Of a stretch of DNA of 64,000 nt, positions 1 to 51,175 are shown piece by piece. Numbering within the stretch: the first letter of the stretch is position 1; each line of letters starts with the position of its first letter. Where the stretch lies: the NCBI RefSeq assembly GCF_033153115.1, contig NW_026889795.1, forward strand, positions 11,222,001 to 11,286,000, in the 5' to 3' direction. The notes under the pieces are model-generated. The model was not told the DNA's origin. It made no database searches and saw only the letters and a program-made list of their open reading frames with translations. This DNA comes from Saccostrea echinata. Taxonomy: Eukaryota. Both the position numbers and the translations under genes were made by a program.

Positions 1-687
1 GCAGGAATATGATGTGACAGTAATATGCATGTATGGAGACTTTTGTAGTGCAGATTTAAAGAACTGAATGTACCTGGAGGTAGGATGGGGTCACATTGGG
101 GGTTAAAAACCCATTTACCGGTACATGTGAAAGCAAAGAAATTATGAAAAAAAAATATGTTTTCAATAGTTGCAGTGCCACACTAATTCACATTGCAATG
201 CAACCTTCTCTTCCATTGGATTTAAGTTTCCAATTAAAAAACAAAAAACATTGATATCATAGGGATAGGATTTGGCTTAAATAGGGTATCAATTTTCACA
301 AAATGCATGCATATGGAAGTAAAATGCTAAAAATTTCTTCTGAACAGCAAGGCTGTTTCAATCATTTTGTTATGGCAGCATGATGTAACACCCCCCCCCC
401 CCTCCCCCCCCCCCCCCCCGTGTGGATTCAAGTTCAGTTTAATCATGATTGGTTAAATTGTTCAGGGAATAAAAAGCTTTTTTTTTTTAATTTAAATCTT
501 TAGCAGAGAGGATGTGACTTTGGTGAGCATTGTGACTCCTGCTCCACTTGCTTTCATCACTGGTATGCCTTAAGAACCTAAGTGCAATTTTGAAATTAAA
601 AATTAAAGATTATGCAGTAAGTAATTTTAAAATACATGTAGTTCAAGGAATTTAGAACACAGATACATGTATATTTTTCCTTTGCAG

Positions 688-3600
688 ACCCCAAAGAAAG
701 AGAGAAAACATGGAATGAAAGCATCCACAGAATGTTATGTAAGTGATCTGACCCTGTCTAAAATGAATTTTGCATGACTTGTATTAATTATTTTTCAAGC
801 AAGCTGTATAATGGTTATGTGTAGGATTTGGAGCCATCAACATCAAAGGAATTAGATGGGAAAGGGTCACCACTAGGCAGTAATGTAGAGGAACAACCAC
901 ATAGAAAAATAAAATTGTCTCCAATCATTATTGAAAATGAGGTATGTTTAGTACAAGTAAATTGCCATTGTTGTTTATGAAAGTTTTTTAAACAAAAATT
1001 TTAAAAGTTTCTTGTGGCTTCACAATTGAAGAAATTAGTCTGAAACTTCACTGAGGAAAGTCAACAAAATTTCTAAAATTGACCAGAATTTGAAAGAAAC
1101 TGCATGCATTTGGATGTATTTTTAGGCATCAAAATATAATTTACCACTGTACCAATTAATAGTGTGCTCTGTTTAATAGAAGTGATTATATGAAAGCTAG
1201 AGATTGTTTCTCTTAAATTTGAACTTACATATAATATTTGAAGATTTTTATTAGGGATGGCCACATGCAGTAAACTGACAAATTGATCAGAAAGATCATA
1301 CTGGGTACAAATTCCATATAAAGCAGTCAACATTTTTAGAAACTTTTGTGATGAACTTACTTAAAAATTGTGCATTTATTTTAAATGTAGGGTTCTGATG
1401 ATGATTGTAAACTCCCGAAAATGGAATTATCAAGATCAGTAAGTGTTTATTTTTCATGACTTTCTAGTTGTTTGGTTTTTTTTTTCATTCTACAGCTTAA
1501 ACTTTCCTAATAGTGATTGGAATGTACATTGGTACATTTGTAATAGTTGGGCATACCCATATACCCTATCCAAAACAATACCACTGAATAAAATTTAAGG
1601 AGACTCACAAAAGGTTTTAACCCCCCCCCCCCCATCTACCATATGGGTATAATGGCAAAATCAATTTTTTGCTATTGAAAACTCTATTAAATAACTAGGT
1701 GTCATTTTGCTAGCCTGTTGCCAACAGTTCCTCCATTTTCTTTCTGTTTTTTTTTTTTTTTTTTTTTTTGGTAATTATAGTTATTAATTTAAACAAACTT
1801 TCAGTAAATTTGGATAATCTATCAAATAACAAACATTTCGCTATTAACTTAGTCATAATTTTATTATTACACAAGGTAACAGGATTCATTATGATTTTTG
1901 GTCACCTTAGTCACAAGATATTTCATTTGCAGACCCAAAAGGAAAAGAGAAAACGAGACATGAAAGCATCCACAGAATGTTATGTAAGTTGTCTGCCCTT
2001 GTTTATAATTACATATAATCACATATGACTTGTATTATGTTAGTATTATTCTAGCAAGCTGTATAATGGTTATGTGCAGGATTTGGAGCCATCAACATCA
2101 AAGGAATTAGATGGGAAAGGGTCACCACTAGGCAGTAATGCAGAGGAACAACCACAAAGAAAAAGAAAGTTGTCTCCAATCATCGTTGAAAATGAGGTAT
2201 GTTAGTATGTTTTAGTACAAGTAGATTGCTTCTTTCCTAATGAATCCATGTGAATATTTTCAATTGTATTTTAAATACTTTCAATGGGGGATATTGTTCA
2301 TGGTCATAAACTTAAAGCTAAATATGACTCTTTGAAGAAGAAAAATTTTTCCTCCCTTTTCCTCTCATTTTAATCTTTTTCTTGAGCACTATTATAAACC
2401 GCAGACTTCTTCACAGTCTGAAGATTTTGCTGTACAGATCTTACTTGTATAGACATATATATAAACTAGTATCTAAATTATATTGCTATTGATGCTCAGT
2501 CTCCATAAAATTGTCAAGTTTATGCAGCTATAGCATGTCAGGGGGAAAGTAACATCAATTGCATGTATGATTTATTACAAACAAACACAAATGCACGTAA
2601 ATGTAAAAACAAAGAAAACTTTAGAATTAGTCAACATCGATCATGAGTTCCAGGTGTGCATTCTGGTTTAATAATATATATTCTATTGCTGATATTTGAA
2701 AGATGAAAACTAGCTTATGGCTATTTATGAGTCCAGGAAAAATAACAGTTTAATTGTGCAAACATTTTACCAATCCATTGCCTTTAAATTGTAATTCAAT
2801 AAAGGACTGAAATTGGCTACTCAGTCTGTGCATAATTTTGGGTCTGTTTGTCATAAACTTCATGTGTTATGTGTATTCCTTATTAATGATAGGCAGCATT
2901 GTTAGACACAAGAGTTATCAATCTTGTTGGTAGAAGTATTTTTTTTTCTTCATAATTGATGTTGTGCTTATGAACACATCTATAGGCATCAGAAGCAAAT
3001 TGAAAGGGGGGGGGGGGGGTAACTGAAATGGGGAGCTAAACCAACAGAAAAAGGTAAGCCCCAATTTTCAATGCCTATATTATGGCCGTCTTTTGAAAAA
3101 AGTGGTGGGGGCTAAGCCCCCCCCCCCCCCATTTCCGATGCCTGTGGAATGTTACTAAGCAATTTGAGATTCATTTTGTAACTGTCGATCTGAAGAGCCA
3201 TTAAAGGTTAAAAGGCAGGAAGCACTTACAGATAAAATGAATTTTCAGGTCTTGAGAATCTTGACTTTTTTCATTGTATATATATATATATTCATATATA
3301 TTTTAGATTTCTGATGAGCTACCAGACATTGAGGTACCCTCTCTTTCTTCAGACATTAATACAGATCCTAAGTCTGATGCTGTATGTAAAAGATAATGTA
3401 TACTAAGTACACATATTTGTTATCTTTAAACAACACATTTATACATATGTGTATAGAAATGATTATGATATTGAAATAAGCGACAATTTAACATCAAGCA
3501 ATCTACTTTTTTTCTTAAAACTTCACTAGTCTAGTTTTTCCTTAACAAAGATTTGGAATGAGATAGTTAATGTAATGACCTGTTCACACAGAGAGTTTTA

Positions 3601-6600
3601 ATTCGCAGTAAATTAATGAGAAGTGAAATAATGCGTGTTCCCATTCATTTCTTAATCTTTATATGTATGACTTTTCTTAACAGGGGTCTGCGCTTTGCTA
3701 GTGAGGCGTCCGAGTTCCTTTTAGGGACCCCGACCCCCCCCCCCCCCCCCCCAGATTCGCACATGTTGTATAATGCTATCATGATGTCATTTGCAAATCA
3801 CTTCACATTGTGCAGAGCAGATCCATTAGACATAATGTCATGGTGTCTGTAATCATTTCAGTGATAAGCATAATTTCACTTTGTTTTTCACTAAAAAAAA
3901 AAAAATAGCATAAGTACCTATATCTGACCACTGACATGTTGCATGCGACTTGATTTTGCCATTACGCACGTGTCAGAATTTTAATTCTAATTATCTAAAG
4001 AGCTAATGCGGAGTAATTTGATGCACAGTAATTTAATTCAAATTAAATTAATTTGTAATCTCTGTGTAAATGGGATTCAAATTTAATTTGCTGTAACTTA
4101 CATTTGATTCAGATTACTAGTAAATTCTCGGTGTGAACAGGGCATAAAAGTATTTACTGTTCTTTCTTTCAGCTTTCGAAGGAGGATGTACCGGTATTAG
4201 AGGATTTGCCAGTAAGTTGTCAATATTGAATACATGTATTATATATGTTTACTGCTATCTTGTTCTTAATATCAAAAAGTAATCAATCAAATGAGAAATC
4301 ATAAAAGTGGCAGTTTCTCAACATATATGTACATGTATACATGTATATCAGATTCTTTGATTATTTTCAGCTAATGGACAGTGAAGTAGCAGCATTTTGT
4401 GATGTAAGTGTATACCATATTAAATATCTTTAAAAAGTACTATTTATTTTTCAAATTGGATTTTAGCAGTTTTTCCCAAGAACACTTTTTTATACAAGTA
4501 TGGATACATCAGCAAATGTTTCTTTATTGTAGGTCTTGGAAAAGAAGATAAAGAGAAAGGAGGTTTGACATTATGATACAGTTATAGCAGGATTTCTTGG
4601 CGGGTGTAAAATTTGGCGTTTTGCCTGTTCAAATGTATGCCAATCATTTTGGTGTAATTAATTTTAGCGGACACAGGGTTTGAACACATTGCAAAAGAAC
4701 ACTAAGAAGAATACTGAATATTTTAGTGATTAAAATTTTAGCGGGCTACTACCAAACCACTAAAATAAGCCAAAATTAGTACCCCGCTATACGGTATATT
4801 GCCTTGAAGTGTTCACTTGAAGAAGTTCACTGCTCATAACTTACTTCTCAGTAATTCTTTGTAAACCCTATTTCCCAGTACATGTACTTGCACACATAGT
4901 ACAATGTAAACTACTTTATTTGCCCTTGAATGATCAAAGGCCATTGGAAAAAAAAATAATTGGACTTACATAAAGTATTATGTTAATGCTTGGAATTGTT
5001 AATTCTGTCTAGAAGGGTAAGTTTTGTACCTGGTATGTCTCTAAACCTATATTCGATCTCCAAAACCAATAGGCTAATTTCAACCAAATTCATATTAGGC
5101 CTTCAAGGGTAAGTAAGGAGATGCCAGAATAGAAGATCAAAGGTTCACAGGTGAAGATATAGAAGAAAAAAAGAAATCTGTAAAAAAAAAAAATCTCCTC
5201 CTGAACATTAAGACCATGTTAGTCATTTTGGAATTAAAGCATCCAACATGTTGAATCAAACTTAGTAAATCACATTCTCTTGGGGCTAGATTTGGGCCAA
5301 ATATAGGATTAAAATTTTTATGGGAGTGGAAAGGGGAAAAATGCAAAATCTTCTAAAGATCAACAAGGCAACCGTCTCTTGGATGAATTTTATGGCTTAT
5401 GGGCTCTTGTTTTCAAACGTATTTGGTGGTCATATTAGGAACTGAAAGGCCTATTAATCATAATTTTAAATTGCTTTTCAACTTCAAGATGGCAGACGGA
5501 ATAGCCTTGACATTCCCAGACAATGGAAAGATGGTGACTGTGGTGTATGAAAATCATGGGGGAATGTCATTTTCTAGGGCCTTTCATCATACAGACACAG
5601 TACAGGTATGATACATATGATGCATGAAAAGTGCACATTATCATATCATAAACATAATGAAGACAGTAATCCTTGTATATGTATTTAACAAGAGTTATTA
5701 CTATTGAATCAATTTTCTTCTTATTACATGATTTGGATTTAAAGTAACAATTTTTAAGATAGATGCTAACTTGGCCATCATGAGTTGTTACATGTAAGAA
5801 ATAAATTGAAATGATACGTTATATGATGAAAAGTCATCAATGGGATACTCTAGTAGCCAGCAAATTTGAGAATGATTTTCTCACTATAAGTGAGCATTTG
5901 ATAGTAGAGTAATAAATTTTTGGCAATTCTAAATTTCAAATTGAAAGAATTCGAATTTAATTTTTAAAAATGTCTACAAATTTTGGATATAATATGGCAT
6001 TAAAAAAAATGTTCAAGCAGCTCTGGTATGTACATGTAGGTCACCATCTGCAATTTTGGAGTGAATGGTGTTTTGAATGTATACATCTCATAGCATATTA
6101 AATGAATAGAAATATATTTTCTTCTGAATTTAATGTACTTTTAATGCACATATTAAGCTGTCTTATTCACACAAAACAACAGTAATTGGACAATTATTTA
6201 ACATCACAGTGGAGCAACAGAAAAATGGATCTCACATAAAAGATAATAATTGAAATTTTTTTTTCCAGAAAGAAGTCTTGCACCTTTGTATATTGATGGT
6301 TCTTTTTTTTCAGAGTGTGTACACATTTATTTGTCAGATTATTGACCCAGAAATTCTCCCTTCTGTATTCCATTTGGAATGCATTTCACCAACCACCTGT
6401 ACAGAAAGAGAATGCATTCATTGTTTTGAGCTCACAGAGTGTTTTGAAATGCCAATTGATAAATTGCCATCATTGTTGGTATTGAAAGAGGGGGTAAGAA
6501 AATTATACATATATCTTTTAAACATGGTTTGTTTCTTTACTCTGTACTTCCATAAAAGAAAAACTTGAGTCTTGATGCTTGCAGTGAAACAAAACTTACT

Positions 6601-7212
6601 TCATATATTTTACTTAATTTCTTTCTCAGACAAAAAGGTTCTAAAATATTTTTCATCAGCTTTTTTGCTGATAACTGATGTCATAGCTTCAGAACTGTTG
6701 CATTAAGGTTTTATATTTTAGTCTTTGACCATAACACTACAGATCCTGTGATGCAAATATGGTCAAATTTACATTGCAAGATTTTCTGCGCATGGTGGGG
6801 GGATGACCAATATACTCAATTGTTTTGAATTTCTTGTAGGATGGCAGAAAATTCAAAACAATTGAGTTTATTCGTTGGTAGAGACGACTGTAACAAGGGT
6901 TACAAAATGAATAAAATATACAGGTTGGTTAAAGAATGTGCCTGGAATTACGGAATGAAAGGTTGACCAATGCTGGAAAGTGAGAATTCTCCCATACCAT
7001 GCGCAGAAAATCTTGTGACATAAATTGCACTGAGATCTGCAGCGTAATGGTCAAAGACCATGGTCAAAGGTTGTGTAAAATCATAAATCTACAGTTTGAC
7101 AGCTACTGATGTTAATGAACAATTTTAATTCTTTTATATGTATACATTTCAGAATTATCTGGTGGATGAAACCATGACATTTTATGGAACTGTGCTTTTA
7201 AAGAAAAACTAG
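688..7212 (+). CDS. 3' part (12 exons) of a microexon-rich gene with an acidic linker and a C-terminal UBX/ubiquitin-like domain
   Basis: GT-AG exons 688-738, 825-941, 1391-1438, 1933-1983, 2080-2196, 3307-3381, 4173-4211, 4371-4403, 4533-4562, 5489-5605, 6314-6493, 7153-7212. Every length is a multiple of 3 and the frame is open. The C-terminal KMVTVVYENHGGMSFSRAFHHTDTVQSVYTFICQIIDPEILPSVFHLECISP resembles the UBX pattern R.F...DT+..VY.F+......F.L....P. Confidence 0.72.
3577..4143. mobile_element. PIF/Harbinger-like MITE (mirror ~50256-50830)
   Basis: Imperfect TIRs GACCTGTTCACACAGAGA ... TCTCGGTGTGAACAGGGC. Confidence 0.5.
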
Positions 7213-7496
7213 ACTGGCGGGTTCTACATAACTGTCCTGTTTATTTGTGTTCATCTTTTGATTAAACTCTTAACCAAAGTTTACTGAAATCAGAATGCCT
7301 GTCTATCGTAAACAATTTTTATCAGAAGACTATTCAGTATTTTTATGCCCCCAACCATGAAATGGTCAGGCATATAGTGTATATCATTTTGTTTTCATTC
7401 CATCACAGTAAACTTTTTTGTTGGGTATACAAATGAGTTGCTTTGTAATATGTGTCTTTATTTTGCTGATTGAGAAATAAAGACTTGATGGTTTTG

Positions 7497-8990
7497 TTTT
7501 TAGTTCATCTCAGCTGAAAGGTCAATTGAGCTTTTCTGATCACCAATTGTCCATCCGACCATTTAGCTGTCCATCCATCTGTCTGTAAACATTTCACATT
7601 TTCAACTTCCCAAGAACTACTAGGCTGATTTTAAGCAGAGTTGGTACAAAGCATTCTTGGGTAAAGTGAAGTTTAAATTGTTAAAATGAAGAGCCAAGCC
7701 CCCTTACAAGGGGAGATAATCAAGAGAAGACAAAAATAGGGTGGGGTCATTAAAAATTCTCAAGAACCACTTGGCAAGAAAAGCCGAAACTTAAATGGAT
7801 GCATACTGGGATAGTGTAAATTCTAAATTGTTCGAATCATGACCCCCTGGGATAGGATGGGGCCTCCATGGGTGGTCAAAGTCTTGCATGGTATATATAG
7901 GAAAAATCATCAATAATCTTTTCAGGAACAACAAAAGATTAGTCATTTATATTGCAGCATCCACAGGTAATGTGGATTCAAGTTGATTTAAAACATGACC
8001 CTGGGGTAGGGTGTGGCCACTATGCTTGATCAAAGTTTTACATGGGTATAAATAAGAAAAATCTTCAAAACGGAAATCAATTTCACATGGAAGCGAATTC
8101 TTTTCAATGAATTGTTTAAGACAATTAAGCACTTTAAAGTGACCATTCTGTTCGACTTTTCATCATTTGCCCTTAGATGTCGTATCTTAAGTTTATTGGA
8201 TCATGATATTATTAGCTCTTCTGAGCAGAAGGCTTCAAAGAGCTAATGCTATGGCAATTTGTGCAGTGTCCATCAACTTTTAGGAATATGGGCCATAACT
8301 CAAGAACCCCTTGACCAATTTTTGTCAAATTGTCAGAGTATCTCTGGTCAATTGGCTCTCATTTATACTAAAAACAGGGTTGTGACCCTTAAGCAAGGGA
8401 AGATAATTGAGAAAATGATATAAAAAGTACAGGTTGCTAAAAAAATCTTCTCAAGAAGCAGGGGGCAGATTATCACAAAACTTGCATACAAGAATGAGGA
8501 TATGTTGTAGATTATGTTTTGTCAAAACTTTGATATTTTGCTTCCTATAAGGCAAAGGGTCATCAAGTCTTGTCAATTGATGCATCTTAGGTTACATATC
8601 AAGTTGACTCAAAAGTAGGCCACAGTGACCTACGTTTTTGAATATTTTCAGATACCAATTGGCTTAAAATCAGCAAACTTTGTCAGCTACTTCATCTTGG
8701 GTCCTCAAAATGATTCAATTAAAAAGAAGGTCACAGTGATCTACTTTTGGAATTTCAAGGTAATATTTAAATATTTCAATTAATATAATGCTTTGAATCA
8801 TCAAGCTTTGTCAGTTGATGCATCTTGGGTTCTCAGAGTGTGTTAACCAAAATGAAGGTAACAATGACCTACTTTTAGAATTTCAAGGTTTTATCTAGAT
8901 AAATAGAATACTATGAGGCTTCAAATACAAGTGATAGGTATGTTGTACAATTTATCAGAAGAGTGATTCAAGGCCCTTGGACCTCTTTCG
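7497..8990 (-). mobile_element. Two adjacent decayed HINE-like elements between the UBX-like and BTB genes (mirror ~45440-46925)
   Basis: TTTTAG(C/T)TCA..CTGA hairpin ends, CCAT/CTGT microsatellite, ~120-bp internal repeats, AGGCCCTTGGACCTCTT end. Confidence 0.55.
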
Positions 8991-9361
8991 TTAATTTGTC
9001 ATTGTATGAGAAATGTCCAGGAGTAGATTACCTCCAAATTCCTTTGATGGATATATGTCTAGTGATGTATTGATGTTATACAAGGCAATATTACAGGTGT
9101 GTTGAGGGAAGAACATTTTACCGGGTAGTTGATTTTTTAAACGCATGTACTTATTACAAAGTAAGGCTATATAATTATACAGATATACATGTGGACTAAA
9201 TAAAAAGATTTGAAATAAAAGTGACCTTTTATTATAATTTTTGTATGGTGAATAATAATGAAATATATAAAGAGAAAGGTATGAATTGAACAATTAATAA
9301 TGTTTCTATTGCCACTCATAACTTAGATAGATCTCAAGATTTAGCTTGTAAACTCATTATT

Positions 9362-10630
9362 TTAACGTTTTCTCAAAATGAGCCCCTTAATTTGCCCCGT
9401 TTGTACATTTGTTTCTCCAAAAGCATCTTGGAAAGTAATTTTTAGAGTGCTTGTCTCCCCCATTTGAACATTTATAGTCGACAAGCAACCTACACCATTA
9501 TAAGTGGGCCCTCCACTTATCCGCACAACTACTCTATAAACGGTGTCTTTAACAAGAAGCAATGGTTTTGGAAATATTACTGGAATTTCTTTGTAGTTCT
9601 GAGTTTTCTGCTTAGTTTGGCCTTTTCCTAAAAGCTGGCCATTTCCAGTATAAAGATACATGGAAACCAAAAGACCTGCTTCACATACAGTCTCTGTACC
9701 GTAAACAAATATTCCTCTTAAATAGAAAGTATCTAAGTTTATAGTGAATGATATCCTGTCCCCATTTAGGGAATTATCAACAACCCATGTAGGATGTAGA
9801 CTGTGACGTAAAAAGCGATTGATAATTATGTCCTGGTCTGTTATTAGACATCTTATCTTGGAGTGCTGTTCTGGTACTGGTTGTTGTTCAACTGTTGAAA
9901 AGTACACCATGATCTTCAAAGATAATTCATTGTCAATTATGCCTTTATTAACAATATTTTCCAAAAAAAAGTCCATTGACATCATTCCGAACCTTAGAAA
10001 GGGACTTATGTCATGCCAGGTGTGGGGAATGTCTTCTTTAACTTTTTTAGTCCAAAGATTGATGTGATTAAATAGAAGTTCCTCATGTATGCAGAGACTG
10101 TCTCTTTTAACAATATTCAAGAGTAATTCCAGAGGAATTTCTTGGAATTCTTCAGTAGTTATACTTAATAATACTTCTTCAATGTGTTTGTCTAAAAATT
10201 CAAGGTCTTTGTTTTTGATATCTGTTACGCTGTTTTCATGAGAAATAGTTAAAATTTTAAGAACAGTATTTTTTGATATGTTTTGTTCTAAGAATATGCA
10301 ACATTTTTCCATAAGTTCAGTAACACTATAATAGTCAGCAATCTGGTAAATCTCTTCTACATTATCTAAAGTAATGTGTATTTCAGAAGTGTACAAGAAC
10401 TCTAACATTTCCTTTGTATGTTGAATAGAATGAACATCACACTGAATTATGTTTGATTCATCACTGGCATGATTCCACTTTCCACAAAGCCGGGCCTCAA
10501 ACCATTTTGATCCAAGAATTAATACAATTTTATGGGTTTCAATGATGGAATTATCTTGAAGCTTTAACTTTACGTCACAAAGTCTCTGGTCTCTGAAGGC
10601 TTGTATTAACTTTCTCCCAAGAACTGACAT
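9362..10630 (-). CDS. BTB-BACK-PHR domain protein (BTBD1/2/3/6-like architecture), 422 aa, single coding exon
   Basis: BTB: LCDVKLKL..HKIVLILGSKWFEARL..MLEFLYTSEIHITLDNVEEIYQIADYY. BACK: EEFQEIPLELLLNIVKRDSLCIHEELLFNHINLW..LRFGMMS. PHR: INRF..DRISFTI..RGIFVYG..PVIFPKPL..TNVQTGQIKGLIL. Confidence 0.92.
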   Translation of the reverse strand: MSVLGRKLIQAFRDQRLCDVKLKLQDNSIIETHKIVLILGSKWFEARLCGKWNHASDESNIIQCDVHSIQHTKEMLEFLYTSEIHITLDNVEEIYQIADYYSVTELMEKCCIFLEQNISKNTVLKILTISHENSVTDIKNKDLEFLDKHIEEVLLSITTEEFQEIPLELLLNIVKRDSLCIHEELLFNHINLWTKKVKEDIPHTWHDISPFLRFGMMSMDFFLENIVNKGIIDNELSLKIMVYFSTVEQQPVPEQHSKIRCLITDQDIIINRFLRHSLHPTWVVDNSLNGDRISFTINLDTFYLRGIFVYGTETVCEAGLLVSMYLYTGNGQLLGKGQTKQKTQNYKEIPVIFPKPLLLVKDTVYRVVVRISGGPTYNGVGCLSTINVQMGETSTLKITFQDAFGETNVQTGQIKGLILRKR

Positions 10631-12249
10631 TTGTGTAGTCTGAAATACGAAATAGCTTCATATATTAAGACAAAATGACTATGCTTAGGTCACAATGGTT
10701 AATGGAAAGTCACCTTGACCTCATCTTACAATGTGTATACACTGATTACCCGGTAGATGTTTATAGGAACATACAAACAAAGTAGGATTCATTGCCTGAT
10801 CTAACAAATGTGTCTGAAAAAAACGTGTACATGAATTACACATAGAAGTGATGTTAAATTCATATGAATGCAAGGTAATTGTACAATAAATTTATAAAAG
10901 CTAGTTATCTTTAATCTTTCCTTCACTGTTACTTGAAGTTTTGCCAGTACATATAACAGTAACATATAACTTTAATAGTTTGACCCTCGATCTTCCAACC
11001 TCTTAACTTATCCAAAGAGGGGGACCAGTGAATAAGTTTGATGACGATCAATCAAAAGATTCTCAAGATACTCATGGCTGTAAGAACCGGGCCGGTTCCC
11101 CCTCCCACCCCCCAATAATTTTGCCAATGTGTAGAATACACTGTACTATAGAAAATATACATGTAGCTACTATATGCTTGTGCCCCCTCAATAATAACGT
11201 CCGATGACCTTTTTTTTTGCTTGTCAAGGAATTTTGGTAGTTGATAGTGCCCCCCAACTGAAAATGTATGGCTGTGCCCCTTCAAAGTGAAATTGCTTCC
11301 TACGGGCCTGATACTGATCAGACCAACTGACTGCTTAAAATGGCATGCCCTCTTTTTTCAAGCAACACAAATATACAAGTCTTTCAATGAGGATTCAAAC
11401 AAACAAATATCATTACATATTTACTTCATATATTTAATTAAACATATATAATGTACAAGTATATACACAAGGCTATTAAAGAATCACGATGAAGACTATA
11501 AACTTAAATAACAAAACACATATTAAGTATGAAAGCCCTAGCACCAACTGTTCAAAAGTTATGGCCAAGGTTAAAGTTTGGCAATTTTTTGTAAAAGTGG
11601 GTCACACTACAAGGTCAAGGTCACGAGGTCAAATTTGGTGGTACCCAAAGAAAGATTTTGTCACAAGGAATACACCTGTGAAATAGGAAATTTTTGATTT
11701 TGGGGGCATAAAGAGTCAAATAAATACAATATTGTTCAAATATATATGAAGTAAAAGTGGTTCATTCTAAATTTCCTCATTATACTAAAAGCTTTAATCA
11801 ATACATTTCAGTGTGTTTTATAGTGGGCCTATAGATAAGGTGTGAAAAGCTTATTTCAACTCTCCCCTCCAAAAAATATTGCTGAGAAATTCAGTTAATT
11901 ATGCACATTCACTTCTTTTATCCTTGATGGAAATGAAAACAGAGCATCCTTGAAGTACAATAAGTATAACATAATACATCAGGTATCAAAAAAATATTGC
12001 TAACATAAAGAGAAAATATCAATGAATGAAATTGATATTCTAAAGTTAAAAAAAAAAGATAAGGGGGCATATATCTATAGTGTTTCTGGATTTTGAACAA
12101 AGTATTTCTTCCTGCTATAAGCCAGTACATGTAACTATCTGACAGTAGAAACTATTACATAACTGGAATTTTTACTGCAGTTGTGACATTACATTGTGAC
12201 ATGATCTACCTTCATACATACATTCATACATATAATGATATTTCATATA

Positions 12250-15200
12250 TCAAGTCAATAAAAGAGACATAAACTCGCTTAGAAAAATGTACAGATGGCG
12301 AGCACAAGTCATGTCAGTTATGTTGACTGGGAAAGGCAAATTATAATGGCTCAATATAAATGAGGCTACGGAAGCAAAATCCTCGTCAATCTCCTTGAAA
12401 TTATTTCTGACAAGTCTCTGTAACTCAGTCACAACGTTTCTCTGAACAGGATGTAAGTAGTTTGAAGCACCTGAAAAATGAGCAAAATAATTAAGATTGT
12501 TGGAGCTAAAACAGTTGTGAAATATTTTATAACACATGCATATGATACATTTTCAATCATTTTTGTGTGCTTTTGGTACATAAAGATGAGAAACCAATGA
12601 ATATACAATGAATACCTGTCATGTATGTGCTTCCTTTTCTATAACATTTAGCAGAGAGTAGCATCTGCTAAATCTTGTATATAGCTAAATGTTTTCATGT
12701 ATATATTTAAAATAAGCATTTCCTGGAATGTGCTAAATTAATTCTACACTTGCATAGTAAACTAGAAGTGTTTGTGAAACACTGATGCCACAGATAATTT
12801 TACTGGTTTAGCTAATAATTTACTCATACCAACAACTTCAGGATTTTGAAACAATACTTCTGGAATTCCATGCAGGGTATCTCCCAGCTTCTGTCTTCGT
12901 ATGGAATGAGTATTCCATTGGTCCATTATATCTTTTAGATCTCTCTTTATCAGTGGAAGATAAACAAATTGTATACAGGATCTAAAAAATGCAGTTGATA
13001 TATGTAAATATACCGGTATTTAGACTGTTAGTAGCAACAACTTTATTTGCAATTCATTTTTTGAAATAATAAGGTATGCAAGTGGCCCTGGACAAATCCT
13101 CTCATCTGAGTCATGCTGTCACATGAATATTCAAAAAGACTCCCTCCCATACTTGATCAATTTCAGTTATAAGGCTATATACCAAGGTACATGTACATGC
13201 TAACATACATGTAGGTGCACTAAGTCAGAGTGTTATTTTAGAAACTATAGTGTTGTTCTTCTAACATTCCCACAATGTAATAAGCGAAAATCAAAATTTC
13301 ATGTTCACATTGAATGTAGCTGTTGCAATGGCTCTTCCATTAATTGTTACTTAATACCCAAAGAATAATAGTTTTGAAATATGAGTCATGTTTGCAGGCA
13401 AGACTGGGAGTTATAAAATGTAAATATAAGCATTAATTGAATCACTATTTTTTAAAAAATGAAGTCTCATAAGTCCAACAGTGTGTGCAAACAAATTTTC
13501 ATAATGTGCTACCACAATTACAAGTTACTCTATTTGTTTACCATGTTTAAACACACTGTTGCAGTTAGGAGACTACATCTTTCAAGAAATAATAAATGAA
13601 TGCTTTAATATAGCAGTTTCTTTTCAAAGCATAAAAAATGCTACCATAATTTCTTTTGTAAGTACAAATGACATAATATTTTTATCCTCCATGTTACAGT
13701 CTATATTTTGTTACCATTTACAGAGATATAGACGACACTTTATTATCAATGACAGGGTATCATTCTTATCCAAGACAAAATAAATAGACATGTACATCTA
13801 ATATTTCTTTTCAAGGAGGTTCATCTGAACTCCTTTTTCATCTATACATACTTATGTAGAGGATTTCCTATTTCCAGCAGTTCTTCATACACCAATCCCT
13901 AATAATAAATTCCCAAGATATATTTTCGTATTTTTTTATATTTACTATGGCCATGCATATTACCATAAACGAAGTACATGCATAGTTAAAGCTGAACACG
14001 CTTCGTAAAAAGAATGTGTCCGACATATTCGATTGGAGTCGTGTTCAGCTTTAACACACTGTAAAATGTAACTTTTGTCAGTAAAATACTTGTTTTCCTA
14101 AATAAATTAAGAGAAACATTTTTGTAATATTTCAGATGTGGCAATAACTTACTTTGAAATGATCCATCCAGAAATCTGCTTTCATTTGCTTTAAAATGCC
14201 CCAAAATCTTTCAATTCTCTACAATTAATGTTTGTAAAAAACGTTATTAAAACTTGGACATATGATTTTCTTTCCAGAAAATGTTATCTGTGTGTGTTTT
14301 GGGGGTGTGGAGCTGTTTAAAACATGTACAATGCTAACCTGATTTGCAGTCGAAGTTCCAAAAGACACTGCACTTGGATCTGTCTTAAGAAATGTTTGGA
14401 ATGTTGCGATGATCCCATTTTCTGTGCCAGTATCAGCTCTTATCTTTTGAGGACAACCTTAAACAGACTATGATGTTATCAATATATGCCTTCCCTTCTA
14501 ATTCATAACAAGTATTTTGAAATTTTGGTGGCTTAATTTCAGAAATCAATTGACATTTCTTGCAGCACACTTGCAATTGTAACTTGTCATTAAACATAGT
14601 ACCAGGTGATTCTGTCACTATACCTTTCATAGTATGAACTGCATTCAGGAAGTATTCTGCTACAACCTCCGGTCTTTTATTAGTCACATCTGCTTCCAGC
14701 CATATCAACTGTCTGGAAAATCTTTCAAAATAAATTGAAAATACGGAAGTGGTACAATCTTAGAAAGACACTATATTTTTCTCTTATATATATGCAAAAT
14801 AAGAAATTAGATTTTATAGTTGAAAGTTTTCCATTTATGTGAATGTTGTTGATCCCATCAATAATTTAAAACAACATCTGCAATACAGCAGATTAAACAA
14901 ATAAATTCAAGTCTTTCTCATGAAAGTAAATATACCAGATTTTTAAAACCCTTAACTTACTAAAAAGTGTGATGGAAGAACATAATGGAAGGATGGAAAG
15001 ACAGAAGTTGGAAAGAGCAAAGTACGGAAGACAGACATGGCAAATGATATATGTTTTGGCCATATTCATGGTGGGGCATAAAAATGTCAGATATGAAATG
15101 CTTCTATTTGAACAAGACTAATCATCGGCAGTGGCAGATTTAGAGGGGGCCTGGGCCCCCCTTTTGTGTCAAAATATCCATAAGATTTAAGAAATCATAT

Positions 15201-18200
15201 TTTTTTGGGTGTGGCTGTGGGCCTCTACCCCAACCCCAAACTGGTCAGCACCCCCCCCCCCCCTTTTCCAAGATACCTGGATCCGCCACTGATTGGCTCT
15301 GCTGCTTTCCTTCAAAAGATTTTTTTTTTATATTTACCTACGGTAATATATTTTCCTATGTAAAACTTTGAATGATCCCCTATTGTTGTCCCACCATAAC
15401 CCTAGAGACAACTAGAGATAACAAGAAATCTGTGAGCCAGTGCTCACTAATAATACCCCTGCTCTGTTGTGAATACACAAGTTCAGTTATGGACAGACAC
15501 AGTAATAATCAGGAAATTGACATCGATTTGTACAAAAATGATTCGCAACATAAAGCATGCCTAAACAATGAGTGAGTTAAAATTTCAAGCATCTGCGATG
15601 AGAAGTTGCTGAGAAAACTGCGACCAAAATTTCTTATGTATTGTACGGACAGATGCACGGATAAACAAGAAGTTGACATCAGATTCGTATAAAAATGAAT
15701 CCCACCACATGGCATGCCTAAACAAAGAGTGTGCTAAATTTTCAAGCAGCTGCAATGAGTAGTTGCTGAGAAAACTGCGACCAAAATTTGTTACGGACAG
15801 ACAGACAGAAGGACAGACACACAAGGGTAAAACAGTATACCCCCCTCTCCTTTGGAATGGGGGTATAATAATTGAAAAAAAAAATGAATATACACTATGT
15901 CCAGAAACTTTTACATCTGGTCCAGTGGTTCTTGAGAGGAAGTTTTTTTTTTTTAATTCACTATATTTTCAACTAATCCTTGTACAAGAGCATGGTTCAT
16001 CTGGAAGAAAAAAAAACCCTCACCCAAGGATGCTTTGTGGCAAGTCTGGTTAAAATTGGTCCAGGGTTCTGAGAAATATGAAATGCTAAATGCATACTGA
16101 CAGACAAGCAGACAGATGGACAGAATTCAATTAGAAAACCACATTTGAGCTTTTAAAAAAATATAATTTAAAATTTTGATGGTTTCTTTTTGTATCTACA
16201 TGTAAGTAAAATATTTGATTTCAGAAATTATTATACTTTTATGAGAAATCCATGTAGAACTAACATTAAATCAAACCACGCCAAAAAATCTTTTTAATTG
16301 AAAAGGAAATGCTTCAAAAACAATATGTCCACAATTATACAGTCCAAAAGAATATTTAAAGTTTTAGACATGAAACTACGAAAATCACATGAAATTACTT
16401 TTTTTTTTTTTTTTAAAAAATAACTTAACATATTGTATTTGAATACATTGATCATTAGTGTGGAATGTTTAAATTAATCAAACAAAACAACAAATCATAC
16501 CCATCAATGCAACCATGAATGCTTATACCATATGGCTTTAGTTTGTCATAACCATCTATAAATGCAGTTTCATGTTTGGAATTACAGTTTAATTTCTGCT
16601 TGCAGGTGTCTCATAAGAAGTTAAGACATTTGATATATTTGTTTAATTTTAAAGCATTTCAAACCTATTTCAAATATCTTTTCTTGACATGACTGACATT
16701 TAGGACAGATATCTACTATAAAATAAATGATATGTTTGTGAAACACTGATGCCCCAATCTCAACCAAGCCTTGGAGTGTCCATCCTTAGAAGCATCATCC
16801 ATGCTAATTTAGTTAAAGTATGGCTAAAATTCACTCATCTGGAAAATATAGGGCAAATCCAGCATTTGAAGCAGAAAGGATGGTGTACATCCCAGCATCA
16901 TCCATGCAAGTTTGATCCAAGTAGGGCTTATAGTAACATGGACATGTATAGGAATGAAGCTGCTTCAAAAACATTAACCTGGTCAATCATCTGAAAAATG
17001 TAAGTAAGATCCAGCATCTGAAGCAAGTCTGGTAGTGTCCATCCCTAGATGCATCATTCCTGCAAGTTTGGTCCAGGTAGGGCTTATAGTTTCCAAATGG
17101 ACTTGCTCCTAACACTTTTACAGGGATGTGACGCTAACACCCACACCAACAGTATAGCATAAGCTCATCTCGACATCATCGGGGTGAGCTAAAAATAAAT
17201 TACACAACCTACTTTTCATCTTATCAAATTGTAAAAGTTACATAAATAAATAAATAACAGGATTGATTTTGACTCTTCATTCATGAACCAAAAGAAGGCA
17301 ATATTACACTTACCCAAATGCCAAACAAAATTTGGACCCTATAAATACACATTGTACAAATAAGTCCCTGACTTTCATATTCTGTACAGCAGGAAATTAG
17401 CTCGTGGAAACAATATTTGCAGAAATAAGAACCCCTCAATATCATATAGTGAATAATTCTTTTAAAAAATGATAAATTGAAATATTACCATTATCTGTGG
17501 TTAGATTCTTTAATTCTCTCTGTGTTTCATTGCAAACATAAAAGCAGTAATTAATAAAAGCAGAGAAACTGATGTAGACCGTCTTGCTAATAATGAAGGT
17601 TTATGGATCAATTTAATCACTTAATACATGTAGTTGTTTGTGATTTTGAAGCTTAATTTAATTAATAATTAATTAATAAATATAATTCTATAACTTAATA
17701 GTCCACCAAAAAGACGTGCAAGGTAATTATCCACGAAACACACAGAGTTAACCTTTACATGTGCTTATTACTTATTCTTATTACCTTTAATCGAGGCACT
17801 TACCTAGTAAAAACAAAGGTTACACATTGATTTAGTTATACTAACAGTTCAACATAACTACTAATAGAAGGGAAAGGAAAAAAAAAAACAAGGGAAAAAA
17901 ATTAAAATCATCAGGATGCGTGACAACGCTTTGACTTCAAATTGGTATTGATCTGATATTTCGTTATATTTAATCGGGTTCAGAAACGACATGACATAAT
18001 ACGCAAGGAAAATACATGCAGTGCTGAATTAATAACATTTCCTTTCTGCAAATTCAAACAACCCTGATTTACTAGAAATTTAAAAAATTGCGATTTTAAC
18101 CTGCTGTACAGTACATGTACAAGGTATATTTTACTTTTATTCTTGCATAATTATTTTTCAAGCTTTGAAGTGTTGAATTTTGTCACATTTATGAAATTAA

Positions 18201-20478
18201 TACATTAATAAATACTGAGATGATCAATGTTTCATAATTTTTCTTTCAGTCTTCGGTCTATACCTTACTAAAGTATTGCCTTCTTCTCAGTCTTCTCTGC
18301 TTCCTTCTCTTTATCCCATCTTCATCCAAAAGACGAACTATATCTCTTGCTATGGACCTGTATCATTAAACATTTATTTCATTTAATGTATCAAAATTTT
18401 ACAATTATTGTCTATTTTTGAGGGCAAATATTATAACTTTTAAGCCCAAGAGAACCACCACCAACCAAGGCTCAGCCATGCAGTCTTAACAATGGTTTTT
18501 TAAGGGTGAAATTTTTCAATACAACTCTCATTGAAAGACCAAAATATTTGTTATACCCGGGTATTTTACTGAATGGTTCATGAAATATAATTATACATGC
18601 TTATAGATTCCATGCAGTCAGCAATTTTTGGGAACATGACTCATCATTTTTAATGCTAACTGTTGCTACATTCTGTTGCATTGGATGGGCATGGTTTAAT
18701 CAGTCATTGGAATATAGTGTTTTTATCAAATGTTTCTCAATGAATCAGATTCAACTAATTTACATGAAAGTATAACATCAAAATATTTGCATGTTTGGAT
18801 GTATTTAATCATGGATGGAGGAATGGACTGACTTTGATTATATACTTACCTGGTAATATTCAGCTGGTGTTTCATTTTTATAATTCTTCTTAGACTTTCA
18901 GCACCTGAACATCCATTCAGTATTTCTTTCTACAGAATATTGTAAATTGCATGTATAAGGTTTGCTCTATATAACTTTATGTGTATTTTAATTAATATAT
19001 GCAAGTTTTAGCATAATTTTCCGAATTTAATAGTACACTTTTTCTCCTTAAATACATGTACATGTGTAATGTATGTAATTTTAAATTTTGGCAACATTGA
19101 TGATTTAGAGCTGAAAAGACATCAGGGATATGAATTCCACTAAAATATGTCAAATTCCACACATCTTTCATACATATACATCCAACAAATAAGTTAATCA
19201 TTGTGTTCTAAACTTTCATTGAAGAATTACCGGGTACTTAATAACAGTTAAAAGAACAGAAATATTTAACATGCACGTGCACCTTTATATTTATGAATTT
19301 TCTAAGAAATAAAATTATTACCTGTGCAATATCAAATATTTCATCTAGAGCAATGTCTGCAAGCCTCCTTTTCAAACCAAGTCTAGGTAGAACTTTTCTT
19401 GTTAGGCAATTATAACTGCAAAATTTTTAATCACATCGAAGCATCATCATTGAATGACAATTTATGTATTTGATTAAAAGTCATGATACATTACTAAGAC
19501 TTCCAAAAATATTTTTTTTTAAATTTTGTATTATAATACCTTATGTCACAGTTATGGTTTCTCTGGATCAAATAATGGATTAAACGGTAGTTAAAACCCT
19601 TATAAAACAATTCTTTTATCTTTTCAAGTATATCTAAAAGAGAAAAAGAAACCTTTTAGCATAAAGTACTGATCATTTTATTATATAATCTACAGTTCAG
19701 CTTATACAAGAACATGATCTAGAGGATTTTCCCGATTTTCCCCAGAATAATGAAGTTTAACTGTATATCAAAACAAAACATTGCAAATGTCCATTATTCA
19801 TAAGATATACACTGCTGATCAGACTAAAGACAATGCTGAAAAGGAACAGCTTATTCTGATAAAGCAAAAAACAGCAGAACAGTAATTTTGAGCCAGGCTC
19901 ATTGCTCTACTCTTAGAGCAATAATTGCCTTTTTGTCAGGGTGTTCAACTGGATATGCTGCTTCCTCACTGCCAAATAAAATTTACAAGTTAAAAAAAAA
20001 GTATGTATATGCTCAGACGCTTTTGAGACAATACAACACTAAAATTAAACAAAGTAAAGTAAACTGATAAATTTTCTTAACAAACAAAATTAATGGTAAT
20101 GTACTTTGGTTTCTCACATGTGCCATGATGTACTACGATTTATTAATATGGTTTTAAAAGATGCATGTATGCAAAAAGTTTTCATCCAGTCCCCCTCAGT
20201 GTCTGTAGCACATACTAAAAATAAAGGTAGCATAACCAGGATAACACTAATGCAGGGAGCACGCGACCTGTGGTACACTTTGATGCAGAACTTCCCACTG
20301 AGCACTCATCTGAGCATAAACGTTTGTCCTTGCTGCATCAATGTTTATTTTTGTACATGGTGTAAGACCCCAGAACGATCCATGTGATAAATTCAATGTT
20401 CACTATTCTGTAAATGAGCTCTGCTCTCTATACTTCTGAGTACTTTGATTTTAAATATCACTTACCTTGTCTAATCAT
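12250..20478 (-). CDS. 13-exon DDE transposase, 385 aa, IS3/IS481-like integrase core with a probable helical N-terminal DNA-binding region (IS3EU type)
   Basis: Exons: 20478-20466, 19633-19540, 19415-19322, 18929-18850, 18357-18264, 17338-17314, 16555-16501, 14721-14624, 14457-14339, 14218-14153, 13898-13852, 12981-12830, 12470-12250. All introns are GT-AG and phase-compatible; total 1158 nt with no internal stop. Motifs: RRLRRRQYFSKGPNFVWHLDGYDKLKPYGISIHGCIDGFSRQLIWL, KIRADTGTENG, GTSTANQRIERFW, QWNTHSIR, HGIPEVLFQNPE. The 13-nt first coding exon is the least certain. Confidence 0.9.
15128..15291. mobile_element. Short hAT-like MITE; similar G/C-run MITEs at ~2983-3143 and ~11073-11310
   Basis: CAGTGGCAGATT ... 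GGATCCGCCACTG inverted ends with internal C/G runs. Confidence 0.45.
15420..15870 (+). mobile_element. HINE-like element in transposase intron 7 (mirror copy ~39735-40175)
   Basis: ACAAGAAATCTGTGAGCC start, two ~157-bp units, GACA microsatellite, terminal ATACCCCC..GGGGGTAT hairpin. Confidence 0.65.
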
Positions 20479-21940
20479 CTTCACTTCAGCTTATAATCTT
20501 TGTAAAACTACAGATAAGGAATGCAATACATATAACACCCAGTTCACTTCAACAGTATATAACTAAATATACGTTTACAATGTTAATGATAAGAAACTCC
20601 TTATACCATATGCTTTACTCTCAGGGTCATTCAGGGTTGCAAATAATCATTAGCCCACTCTCAAAATTTAAGTGTTTTGTCTGAAGGTAAGGGTTGATAT
20701 TTTCCTGGAAAATTCACTAGCACAAGGGTTACTGATCATTAAAAATTTCTAGCCCAAACCTCAAACTAACTAGCCCAACAATTTTTTAATGCAAAATAAA
20801 TTAAAACACAACAAAAGTAAATGTTTCAAATGCTTTGGTAACAGAAACAAATTAAAACTAGTTTTCAGTCAAAAGAAACCAGTTTACATACATAGAAAAC
20901 AGAAATAAAGTCACAAGAATATTTTCTGGTCTGCTAGTCTGGCAGACTATAGTTACATTTAAATTAGCTAGCCCTTGAAGTCTTAAAACAATTAGCCCCA
21001 GACTTTGGCTACCAATTTCAACCCCTGTTGAAGGCTTCAAACTCTTCAGGATGTTATTGCCCACATAGCAAGTAAAAATCTTATTGGAACTTCAAAACAT
21101 ACTGAATCGTGTCATCATTACAAATATCTTAGATTACAAAAACCAAGTGGAAATTTCAAACAAGAGGTATCTAACACCACAGAAAAACAATAGGGCATAG
21201 CTTTTTGGATTATGATAAAAGAGGATCCAAAACTTTTTCTAATCGAAATTGTGGAAATTAATTAAAAATGGAATTTGATTTGAAGTAAAGCAGTATGCAT
21301 AAAGAGTTTGTTTCTCTTTTCTTTATAATTGTTTTCAACCTTTTATTTACATTAATGTGGGCCCCAAAGCAACAATACAGGCTAGTAAAACTCGTGAAGT
21401 TAGGATCCTACATGACTTCTATACTTTCAGACAAGCAATATCAGTCTTAAAAGACAAGTGTAAAAAGTCATACCTTGTGGGCAATGACACCTTTGTGAGG
21501 AGCAACCGTGAGAGAATTAAATCACGCGCATGAAAGAAATTCACGCGCACATGTCTGAATTTCAAAAGTGCGAGGGAAAAATTCGCGAAAAAGAATAAAT
21601 ATACACATGCAACTTATTTGGAACTCACCAGGATTTTGACAAAAAGGTTGCATAATGTGTGATAAAAAATTTATCAAATCATATTCCCTCTTGCATAGTC
21701 AGCTTAAGAGTTACACAGAGCTCATTTTGTTATATTCCGAATACATACAAAACCTAGTCTTTAAATCAAATTTACTTACTTTTGCATGTTGCAAAGACAT
21801 TCTTTCAATACTTTTGCAATATGTACATCAACAAGAAAGTTTTTCTGTCAAAATTCACATTTTGTCATTAGAAAAGCACAAATAATGAACTTGTACTAAA
21901 TAACTAACTACTTAACATGCTAAACTAGGCTAGGGTTTCA

Positions 21941-22910
21941 TTCCCTGACGAGAAAATTCGAACTAGGGGCCGTTGCAGAAGAAAGTTAGGTTTGAAAGTT
22001 CTACACCAGTATACCTTAACATTTAAGTTTGAAAGTTCTGTTCAGTTTAACATTTAAGCTTAAAACATTGCTGGTGTGGCGTTTACTTCTTACCGTGTTT
22101 GTCCTTGCTTGTAACTTTTGTTGTCGAAGACTGAGATCACTGTCACTTCAACAGTAAAATCAACTGAACCCACATGTAAGGATCTCTCTCACATAGACGC
22201 TTGGTATCCGTCACGCTAGAAATAATATTTCTTCACGCTCAAGATAATATTTCCTTCACGCTTCAAATAATGTGTGCAAATCTCTCTCACATTAACGCTT
22301 GTAGCCGTCACGCTAGAAATAATATTTCTCCACGCTCAAGATAATATTTCCTTCACGCTTCAAATAATGTGTAGTCTGTCACAATAATAATCGTGTCTCC
22401 CAGCGTTTCAACATAATTATTGTTTCAACAAGGGAGAGTTCTCGTTCCTGTCACTAGAAAAGAAGTTATCTTTCCCGATGAGAAATAAAAATAAAGTTTC
22501 TACGAACAATTAAGGCGCACATTATTATTGTTGCAAATATGGTGTGTGGTTTTTTTTTTTTTAACGTGCATACATTTTTATTTCCATGAAAATGGCTTCT
22601 TTTTTTTTCTTTTTTTTTAAATTTTCAAACAGTAGTTGTTACATGTATGCCTTCTTATAAATCGTTGAAGTAAACGTAATACAGCTGTAATATGAATCTA
22701 TAATCTTGGTGCTAAATAAAAAATAATGTACACATCGACCGACAAGATGATAATTATTGCTGTTGGCAAGATTATAGTTGTGAAACAAAACATCAGAGGA
22801 TAAAATTATTATTATTATTGGGCTAAATAAAGATAATTTGTACACACATTATGGTAGTATAGTATGGAAACGTGATAATTGTAATTTTTGCGGGGAAATA
22901 TAATAATATG

Positions 22911-22960
<50 letters not shown>

Positions 22961-23163
22961 ATTTTTTTTTTTATTAATTTTTGGTACAATTATAAATATA
23001 TAGGAATAATAATAATGTGGAGGTACCCAAATTATTATTGTTGCAGAAAAATAATAATGTTGTAAAAAAGCAAGTTTTTTGTTTTTGTATGAGATCATTA
23101 TTTTTGGTATAATTATATAGGAAAAAATAATAATAATGTGGGGGTACCCTACGGCTTTCCATA
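21941..23163. repeat. Complete ~1.2-kb TIR of copy 1
   Basis: Matches 61660-62729 in direct orientation from TCCCTGACGAGAAAATTCGAA to CTTTCCATA, and matches 23164-24243 inverted. Confidence 0.88.
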
Positions 23164-23227
23164 CCTCCACATTATTATTATTCCTATATTCTTATAATTA
23201 TACCACAAATTAATAAAAAAAAATAAT

Positions 23228-23273
<46 letters not shown>

Positions 23274-24243
23274 ATATTATTATATTTCCCCGCAAAAATT
23301 ACAATTATCACGTTTCCATACTATACTTCCATAATATGTGTACAAATTATCTTTATTTAGCCCAATAATAATAATAATTTTATCCTCTGATGTTTTGTTT
23401 CACAACTATAATCTTGCCAACAGCAATAATTATCATCTTGTCGGTCGATGTGTACATTATTTTTTATTTAGCACCAAGATTATAGATTCATATTACAGCT
23501 GTATTACGTTTACTTCAACGATTTATAAGAAGGCATACATGTAACAACTACTGTTTGAAAATTTAAAAAAAAAGAAAAAAAAAAGAAGCCATTTTCATGG
23601 AAATAAAAATGTATGCACGTTAAAAAAAAAAAACCCACACACCATATTTGCAACAATAATAATGTGCGCCTTAATTGTTCGTAGAAACTTTATTTTTATT
23701 TCTCATCGGGAAAGATAACTTCTTTTCTAGTGACAGGAACGAGAACTCTCCTTTGTTGAAACAATAATTATGTTGAAACGCTGGGAGACACGATTATTAT
23801 TGTGACAGACTACACATTATTTGAAGCGTGAAGGAAATATTATCTTGAGCGTGGAGAAATATTATTTCTAGCGTGACGGCTACAAGCGTTAATGTGAGAG
23901 AGATTTGCACACATTATTTGAAGCGTGAAGGAAATATTATCTTGAGCGTGAAGAAATATTATTTCTAGCGTGACGGATACCAAGCGTCTATGTGAGAGAG
24001 ATCCTTACATGTGGGTTCAGTTGATTTTACTGTTGAAGTGACAGTGATCTCAGTCTTCGACAACAAAAGTTACAAGCAAGGACAAACACGGTAAGAAGTA
24101 AACGCCACACCAGCAATGTTTTAAGCTTAAATGTTAAACTGAACAGAACTTTCAAACTTAAATGTTAAGGTATACTGGTGTAGAACTTTCAAACCTAACT
24201 TTCTTCTGCAACGGCCCCTAGTTCGAATTTTCTCGTCAGGGAA
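23164..24243. repeat. Left TIR of copy 2, missing the outer ~140 bp
   Basis: Reverse complement of 21941-23022; begins CCTCCACATTATTATTATTCCTATA. Confidence 0.85.

Positions 24244-51099: not shown

Positions 51100-51175
<76 letters not shown>

Follow-up and report, generated by a model that had tools for sequence, protein, structure and literature searches.

An IS3EU-type transposon of the oyster Saccostrea echinata carries a conserved BTB-BACK-PHR and UBX-like gene pair that may form a Cullin-3 adaptor complex

The closest described relatives of the system reported here are the IS3EU transposons of fungi, families of which can bear accessory genes, such as a TET/JBP gene that separates the transposase from an alpha-kinase gene of opposite orientation (PMC12730594). 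IS3EU and GingerRoot elements are recognized by TA..TA ends and a 6-bp target site duplication (PMC10045372), and the ends of the fungal IS3EU elements are stated as TAYGG..CCRTA (PMC12730594). Here we describe a ~32-kb element in a 64,000-nucleotide stretch of the genome of Saccostrea echinata (hereafter the window; assembly GCF_033153115.1, contig NW_026889795.1, positions 11,222,001 to 11,286,000, our contig C46). Like its fungal counterparts, this element has a predicted integrase-like DDE core (Pfam rva_4), TAYGG..CCRTA termini and 6-bp target duplications, and it follows the same three-gene plan in which one accessory gene stands beside the transposase in the same orientation and the third gene runs in the opposite direction. 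The cargo of the two is unrelated: TET/JBP and alpha-kinase genes in the fungi, and in the oyster genes for a BTB-BACK-PHR protein and for a protein with a predicted beta-grasp, UBX-like domain. The oyster element also differs in its size, its ~1.2-kb subterminal inverted repeats, its bivalve host and a transposase gene with many introns.

BTB-BACK-PHR is the architecture of the Cullin-3 adaptors BTBD1, BTBD2, BTBD3 and BTBD6, in which PHR forms the substrate-binding end. The oyster gene shares these three domains by Pfam, and NCBI calls its oyster relatives 'BTB/POZ domain-containing protein 2-like'; in contrast to the four adaptors, however, it is intronless, multi-copy and transposon-borne, and has W-N-H with a variable third residue at the phi-x-E position. 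Poxviral BTB-Kelch proteins such as vaccinia A55 offer a second parallel, being likewise parasite-encoded and BTB-BACK adaptor-like, although A55 belongs to a virus rather than a transposon and has Kelch where the oyster protein has PHR; we know of no beta-grasp partner co-encoded with A55. For the other accessory protein the nearest known domains are the UBX domains of the p97 cofactors p47, PUX5, FAF1 and UBXD7, which give the best structural matches and share with it a C-terminal beta-grasp that lacks a di-glycine, whereas the oyster domain scores below the Pfam threshold, contains a Cys3-His loop and has PHR, not p97, as its predicted partner. Taken as a whole, the locus is best explained as a three-gene IS3EU transposon whose accessory pair would form a Cullin-3 adaptor complex, an explanation to which we assign a probability of roughly 0.55.

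The element, its ends and its transposase

Self-comparison of the window revealed a ~30-kb repeat present twice, with the two copies inverted relative to each other. The first, copy A, fills positions 1..23164 and, judged by the self-comparison and by a left boundary shared with other copies, has a full extent of -8458 to 23164 (negative positions lie to the left of the window), its left end falling at position 1543 of the adjoining locus L031; an extra 148-base terminal unit beyond that end carries the copy to -8606. In searches of the S. echinata genome itself, which cover a 923-Mb assembly, the left-end match begins at the identical base on contigs C43, C42, C58 and C1, and the boundary is common to at least five loci. 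The flank outside it is another repeat family. Copies on C46, C42 and C1 carry the terminal sequences TATGGAAAGCC... and ...GGCTTTCCATA, that is, ends of the form TATGG..CCATA. The right subterminal inverted repeat of copy A (21981..23164) is 82-86% like the left end, and within it the terminal 148 bases (23017-23164) match the left terminal unit at 98%; these imperfect repeats are ~1.2 kb each and the three genes occupy everything between them. An earlier sequence-only reading of positions 688-10630 had placed two non-transposase genes inside terminal inverted repeats, and there they lie, within an element larger than that interval.

The copy on C1 measures 31.65 kb and has the 6-bp target duplication CAAACG on either side, and the pair of copies in the window (71 kb) is bounded on both sides by the 6-bp duplication CCTGAG. 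Three paralogues of the flanking repeat provide empty sites, in which the repeat is continuous and contains a single CCTGAG. Because the TATGG..CCATA ends and the 6-bp duplications match the published hallmarks, we assign the element to the IS3EU type. With these ends, the 6-bp duplications and the integrase-core exon pieces described below, it is a recently active cut-and-paste DNA transposon, of which this genome holds at least 11 young copies. We had also considered a Maverick/Polinton-like element and rejected it, the BTB gene being the sole long open reading frame. An Rfam scan of positions 1-24000 returned no match.

The transposase gene is multi-exon and lies on the minus strand. Its assignment was made on individual exon pieces, and those checked were 12765-13019, 14228-14458 and 16458-16610. 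The first of these scores 27.7 bits against the Pfam integrase-core family rva_4 (cut-off 26), the third matches the same family weakly, and the motif RADTGTENG lies within 14228-14458. Judged by these sequence matches, the transposase has an integrase-like DDE core. One of its exons is found in 10 copies at 98-100% identity in the genome, with further homologues at 39-65%.

The accessory pair: domains, conservation and predicted contact

The BTB-BACK-PHR gene (9362..10630, minus strand) is intronless and encodes 422 amino acids in which Pfam recognizes BTB (4e-20), BACK (3e-13) and PHR (1e-10) in this order, each above its cut-off, so that the reading frame seen from the bare sequence proved to be intact and correctly named. 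The closest solved BTB-BACK structure is that of KLHL3 (entry 4hxi, E-value = 3.5e-19), and other solved relatives of this part are gigaxonin, KLHL11, KLHL22, KBTBD4, SPOP and vaccinia A55. The protein occurs in ~11 copies at 96-100% identity on seven contigs, of which at least 10 are near-identical (97-100% of amino acids) and a further one, on C49, is partial, and has paralogues at 50% and at 34-38% identity that are intronless and mostly intact. Saccostrea cucullata has a BTB protein that is 83% identical. A word-index protein search with the BTB protein gave few matches.

The second accessory gene converges on the BTB gene from the plus strand. Two RefSeq proteins of S. echinata, P0010 (XP_061193015.1, 243 aa) and P0060 (326 aa), align to copy A at 100%, and as they are identical to the spliced product they were used in place of a joined model. 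An AlphaFold2 model of P0010, computed with 14 relatives, is disordered to about residue 115 and has a predicted local distance difference test score (pLDDT) above 90 over most of residues 120-220 (block means 85-96). The ordered end, the last ~110 residues of the protein, is modelled as a helix followed by strand-strand-helix-strand-strand-strand and lacks a C-terminal di-glycine. In an unbiased structure search, the 50 best matches were without exception ubiquitin-like beta-grasps. Structural alignment with VIA-align placed the UBX domain of p47 first (Z 9.6, root-mean-square deviation 2.3 Å, 80 residues aligned), closely followed by that of PUX5 (Z 9.5), and the top Foldseek match was also a UBX domain, at a weak E-value of 3e-3. 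In the ESM Atlas, all the named clusters closest to it are UBX (0.88-0.89), which we treat as a lead only. Exon-by-exon Pfam scans of the gene gave no match, and neither did a sequence-profile search of solved structures. On the strength of the model, the C-terminal domain is a ubiquitin-like fold with UBX as the nearest subtype. The sequence-only reading, which had described a convergent gene with a UBX-like end and had staked its proposal on a ubiquitin fold there, is borne out in both respects. Its exon at 688 is real, and the gene ends with a stop codon at 7210-7212, not near 9300.

The strand 3/4 loop of this domain contains four residues that are invariant in the family, C187, C193, C198 and H200 (C-x5-C-x4-C-x-H). 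In UBX domains this S3/S4 loop carries the FPR signature that contacts p97. Since the invariant Cys3-His site stands there instead, the domain is probably not a canonical p97 binder, and the recruitment of p97 by it is the least supported step of the scheme that had been proposed for the pair.

To follow the pair through the genome we used exon b of the UBX-like gene (6314..6493, plus strand; traced by tblastx and own-genome matches), which covers helix 1, strand 3, the invariant Cys3-His loop and the last strand. It was found in 35 places, 11 of them at 98-100% identity and the other 24 at 40-52%. Almost all diverged BTB copies are accompanied within 3-19 kb by homologues of both exon b and the transposase; such diverged trios were found on C11 (three), C29 (three), C72, C36, C5 (three), C33 (two), C20, C75 (two), C77 and C39, and the UBX-like and BTB genes are convergent in all diverged pairs except one on C72. 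One BTB copy on C39 had no exon-b match. Across the diverged lineages the proteins of the trio are 35-65% identical. In S. cucullata the BTB and UBX-like proteins are each assigned to a contig of 28,211 bases, probably the same one, and relatives of the UBX-like protein are present in Ostrea edulis, Crassostrea virginica, Crassostrea gigas and two Mytilus species.

Between lineages the proportion of synonymous differences (pS) is 0.73-0.80, which is saturated, versus 0.32-0.44 for non-synonymous differences (pN), and this holds for the BTB gene and the UBX-like domain alike. The ten young BTB copies differ by 10 synonymous and 23 non-synonymous variants and 1 stop variant. Their coding sequence carries 0.027 variants per site, versus 0.044-0.071 in the flanks, and has one in-frame insertion or deletion and zero frameshifts, compared with many insertions and deletions in the flanks. 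These data show that the non-transposase genes are a conserved accessory pair of a transposon clade and are under purifying selection. Random cargo evolving neutrally, the outcome that would have spoken against a shared role, is not what we see, as the pair and the transposase recur in diverged lineages with pN well below pS.

Because the pair is co-inherited, we ran a complex prediction on the BTB protein and residues 116-243 of P0010, in three runs and with controls. The ipSAE interface score was 0.66 (runs 0.69, 0.65 and 0.66), whereas no control exceeded 0.01; at least 91% of contacts are common to the runs, and the pLDDT of the partner is at least 66. In the calibration, made mostly on microbial proteins, the mark used for this score was attained by 51 of 78 solved complexes, compared with 2 of 108 mismatched pairs. 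The predicted interface joins PHR residues 381-392 with UBX-like residues 148-155, the latter forming the HGG.S..R hairpin, which is more strongly conserved than any other motif of the family. This hairpin is encoded by exon a (5489..5605, plus strand), which covers strands 1-2, includes the conserved YE.HGG.S..R.F sequence and is conserved in the diverged C77 element. The PHR domain is thus predicted to bind the UBX-like hairpin by strand pairing.

Exon structure of the UBX-like gene and rearranged copies

The UBX-like gene probably starts ~7.9 kb before position 688, to the left of the window, where exons in locus L031 match long proteins of S. cucullata, C. gigas and Mytilus. By these matches we placed a zinc-ribbon exon at ~-7171 to -7097 with two short exons next to it, a 101-aa exon for a first beta-grasp domain at -3883 to -3581 and a short unannotated exon at -2050 to -2000. 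A model of the 101-aa exon has a mean pLDDT of 80 and is matched by RA and FERM-F1 domains at Z 8.0-8.7, with beta-grasps making up all of its top matches, which suggests that it forms a second beta-grasp domain of the protein. The long form, putative in S. echinata, would consist of the zinc ribbon, the first beta-grasp, acidic and basic disordered repeats, and the C-terminal UBX-like beta-grasp with its Cys3-His site. The RefSeq start is an ATG inside the first beta-grasp exon in another frame (L031 6396-6419, window -3604 to -3581), and in-frame continuation from that exon requires the exon at -2050 to -2000. The RefSeq annotation probably truncates the gene in S. echinata.

Within the window the exons are all on the plus strand and were placed by mapping the RefSeq proteins, with AG/GT borders at each of them except 4371-~4406, where no GT follows the maximal protein match. 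The exon at 688..738 (TPKKERKHGMKASTECY) matches both P0010 and P0060 at 100% and has AG/GT flanks. It is followed by a disordered-region exon (825..941) that is included in isoform X1, skipped in X2 and a duplicate of 2080-2196, and by two exons that belong to isoform X1 only, 1391..1438 and 1933..1983, the latter a duplicate of 688-738. The exon at 2080..2196 encodes part of the disordered region, which resembles a nuclear localization signal (NLS), and the two exons at 3307..3381 and 4173..4211 encode an acidic linker. Next come the exon at 4371..~4406, found in isoform X1 and approximate at its 3' boundary, and a short exon (4536..4562) for the helix ahead of the UBX-like domain (LEKKIKRKE; helix 116-128 in the model). 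Exons a and b are succeeded by the last exon with the stop codon (7153..7212), placed both by protein mapping and by comparison with C77. The first evidence of the exons at 5489-5605, 6314-6493 and 7153-7209 was a translated comparison with the diverged C77 element, to which exon b is 43% identical over 72 aa by tblastx, and a phmmer search with exon b returned the full-length proteins. A gene start at 5489 was rejected, as the RefSeq proteins show exons upstream.

The two-exon unit of the disordered region is duplicated (673-953 and 1918-2207, 1.25 kb apart and 87% identical) and the two RefSeq isoforms include it either once or twice; repeated units also occur in the relatives from S. cucullata and C. 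gigas. The UBX-like gene of the C77 element has a GC-AG intron (GCAAGT; L032 6193, which is C77:1252193) where copy A has GTAAGA. Satellite-like tandem units of ~168 and ~146 bases lie at 7480-8100, between the UBX-like and BTB genes, and at 16740-17230 in a transposase intron, and the C77 element has longer arrays of the same units. Comparison of copy A with the C77 element by blastn found only shared satellites, and tblastx was needed for coding matches.

Copy B (23162..62730, delimited by self-comparison) is inverted and stands head-to-head with A. It is without the 1.57 kb that corresponds to 12141-13713 of copy A, which includes the C-terminal transposase exon 12765-13019, the gap point being at 42272-42275, and its BTB gene (43801-45066, plus strand) has a premature TAG; copy B is thus defective in two genes. 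It also contains a nested insertion of 9.4 kb (25434-34858) with the ends CACAGC...GCTGTG and an unusually long target duplication of ~22 bases, inside which a 168-base tandem array occupies 28723-30075. The left subterminal repeat of copy B contains a run of 134 N at 62429-62562. A and B together form a 71-kb palindrome, at the midpoint of which a complete end of A abuts an end of B that lacks its first 19 bases. As a single CCTGAG duplication bounds the pair and paralogous empty sites exist, the two copies seem to have been inserted, or to be mobilisable, as a composite. Elsewhere in the genome, full-length copies form head-to-tail arrays, one of three copies at C40:3850550-3950765 (32.5-kb period) and one of two at C43:307148-372469. 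Their ends are abutting or slightly truncated, which is reminiscent of the abutted-end junctions in bacterial IS3-family elements.

Weighing the explanations

We propose that the accessory pair may form an adaptor complex, encoded by the transposon, for the Cullin-3 ubiquitin ligase of the host. The PHR end of the BTB protein would hold the conserved hairpin of the UBX-like domain, and the UBX-like protein may link the complex to its actual target, which might be the transposase or a host factor involved in restriction or chromatin, or may itself be a regulated substrate. Such a device would resemble the hijacking of cullin ligases by poxviral BTB-Kelch proteins and other viral adaptors. The more specific version, in which a clade of giant bivalve IS3EU elements encodes a two-protein Cullin-3 receptor that ubiquitylates a defence or chromatin factor or tunes the transposase, is put forward tentatively, as a possibility that we rate well short of even odds.

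Several observations weigh against an adaptor complex of this kind. In the HMMER alignment to 4hxi, W-N-H stands opposite M-S-E of KLHL3, which we take to be its phi-x-E Cul3 contact motif, and across 16 family members the W is invariant and the third position is occupied by H, S, P, Q or K. Gene order varies, the C11 type having the transposase between the other two genes, so the module is not rigid. The copy on C42 has no target duplication at its borders, and as to expression the RefSeq models are predictions. Other beta-grasps (kindlin, FERM and PI3K) align to the UBX-like domain at Z values up to 8.5, about 1 Z unit below UBX, and the Pfam UBX family (PF00789) was matched in 2 of the 7 members scanned at 13.7 and 13.8 bits (E-value = 0.077 and 0.069), below the cut-off of 21. 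The S3/S4 loop has no conserved F-P-R, the proline alone being mostly kept at the matching position. Support for the binding of the two proteins comes from the model score.

The non-canonical Cul3 motif would sit comfortably with a pair that works free of any ligase, in which a BTB-BACK-PHR dimer serves as scaffold and the zinc-ribbon, two-beta-grasp protein as a cofactor binding DNA or the transposase, so as to control nuclear import, assembly or the choice of target. A parallel would be the second proteins found in other transposons. The partner's zinc ribbon and NLS-like basic repeats are in favour of this reading, and the head-to-tail and head-to-head arrays suggest an unusual handling of ends or targets. 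However, the BTB-BACK part is closest to the bona fide Cul3 adaptors KLHL3, gigaxonin, KLHL11 and SPOP, and to our knowledge BTB-BACK-PHR is otherwise known from Cul3 adaptors (BTBD1/2/3/6), so we consider this arrangement rather unlikely. Somewhat lower still we place the full scheme of the sequence-only reading, a ubiquitylate-and-extract module in which the BTB protein ubiquitylates through Cullin-3 and the UBX-like protein recruits p97/VCP for the extraction of transpososome components or silencing factors. Its domain assignments stand, as do the claims that the cargo belongs to a real transposon and is non-random. It gains from the fact that both top structural matches are UBX domains solved on the N domain of p97/CDC48, from the C-terminal position of the domain (typical of UBX cofactors), from the UBX language-model clusters, and from the two sub-threshold Pfam UBX matches, which come from two genera, share one register and cover strand 2 and helix 1. 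The p97 arm itself finds no support in the loop, in which the FPR that contacts p97 in UBX domains is replaced by the invariant Cys3-His insertion; furthermore, no conserved strand-1 arginine was apparent by eye against p47 and FAF1, and the PHR domain is predicted to take up the conserved hairpin. We regard the scheme in its entirety as improbable.

DNA transposons do capture host genes, as the gene fragments in GingerRoot elements illustrate (PMC6839031), and the BTB gene of one copy in the window is interrupted by a stop codon, so that the two genes might be passive passengers without function for the element. Yet they are kept together with the transposase across lineages whose synonymous sites are saturated, in intact frames of equal length and with pN far below pS, and the pair is also present in other bivalve genera, all of which makes mere passage highly improbable. 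The tandem arrays on C40 and C43 and the palindrome in the window could in turn recall segmental duplications of a host gene cluster with no transposon involved. Sharp boundaries common to five contigs, terminal inverted repeats, 6-bp duplications and paralogous empty sites speak otherwise, and the target duplications together with the empty sites rule such duplications out in practice. An adaptor complex acting through Cullin-3 is the explanation that we retain.

Searching the literature for BTB, UBX or cullin cargo in DNA transposons, we found no description of such cargo. IS3EU elements, and fungal IS3EU elements with accessory genes, are known; new, in that we found no paper on it, is this conserved BTB/UBX-like pair. 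DNA transposons are usually thought to need a transposase only, and conserved accessory genes such as the fungal TET/JBP reveal host manipulation. If our explanation is true, the pair would be the first example in a DNA transposon of a module that hijacks a cullin ligase. To date this strategy is known from viruses, and the viral means of counter-defence would thereby extend to transposons. As a young element with defined ends and intact genes, it offers a directly testable system. If the pair does act via cullin, it would offer a way into the control of transposons in molluscs, a group whose genomes abound in DNA transposons.

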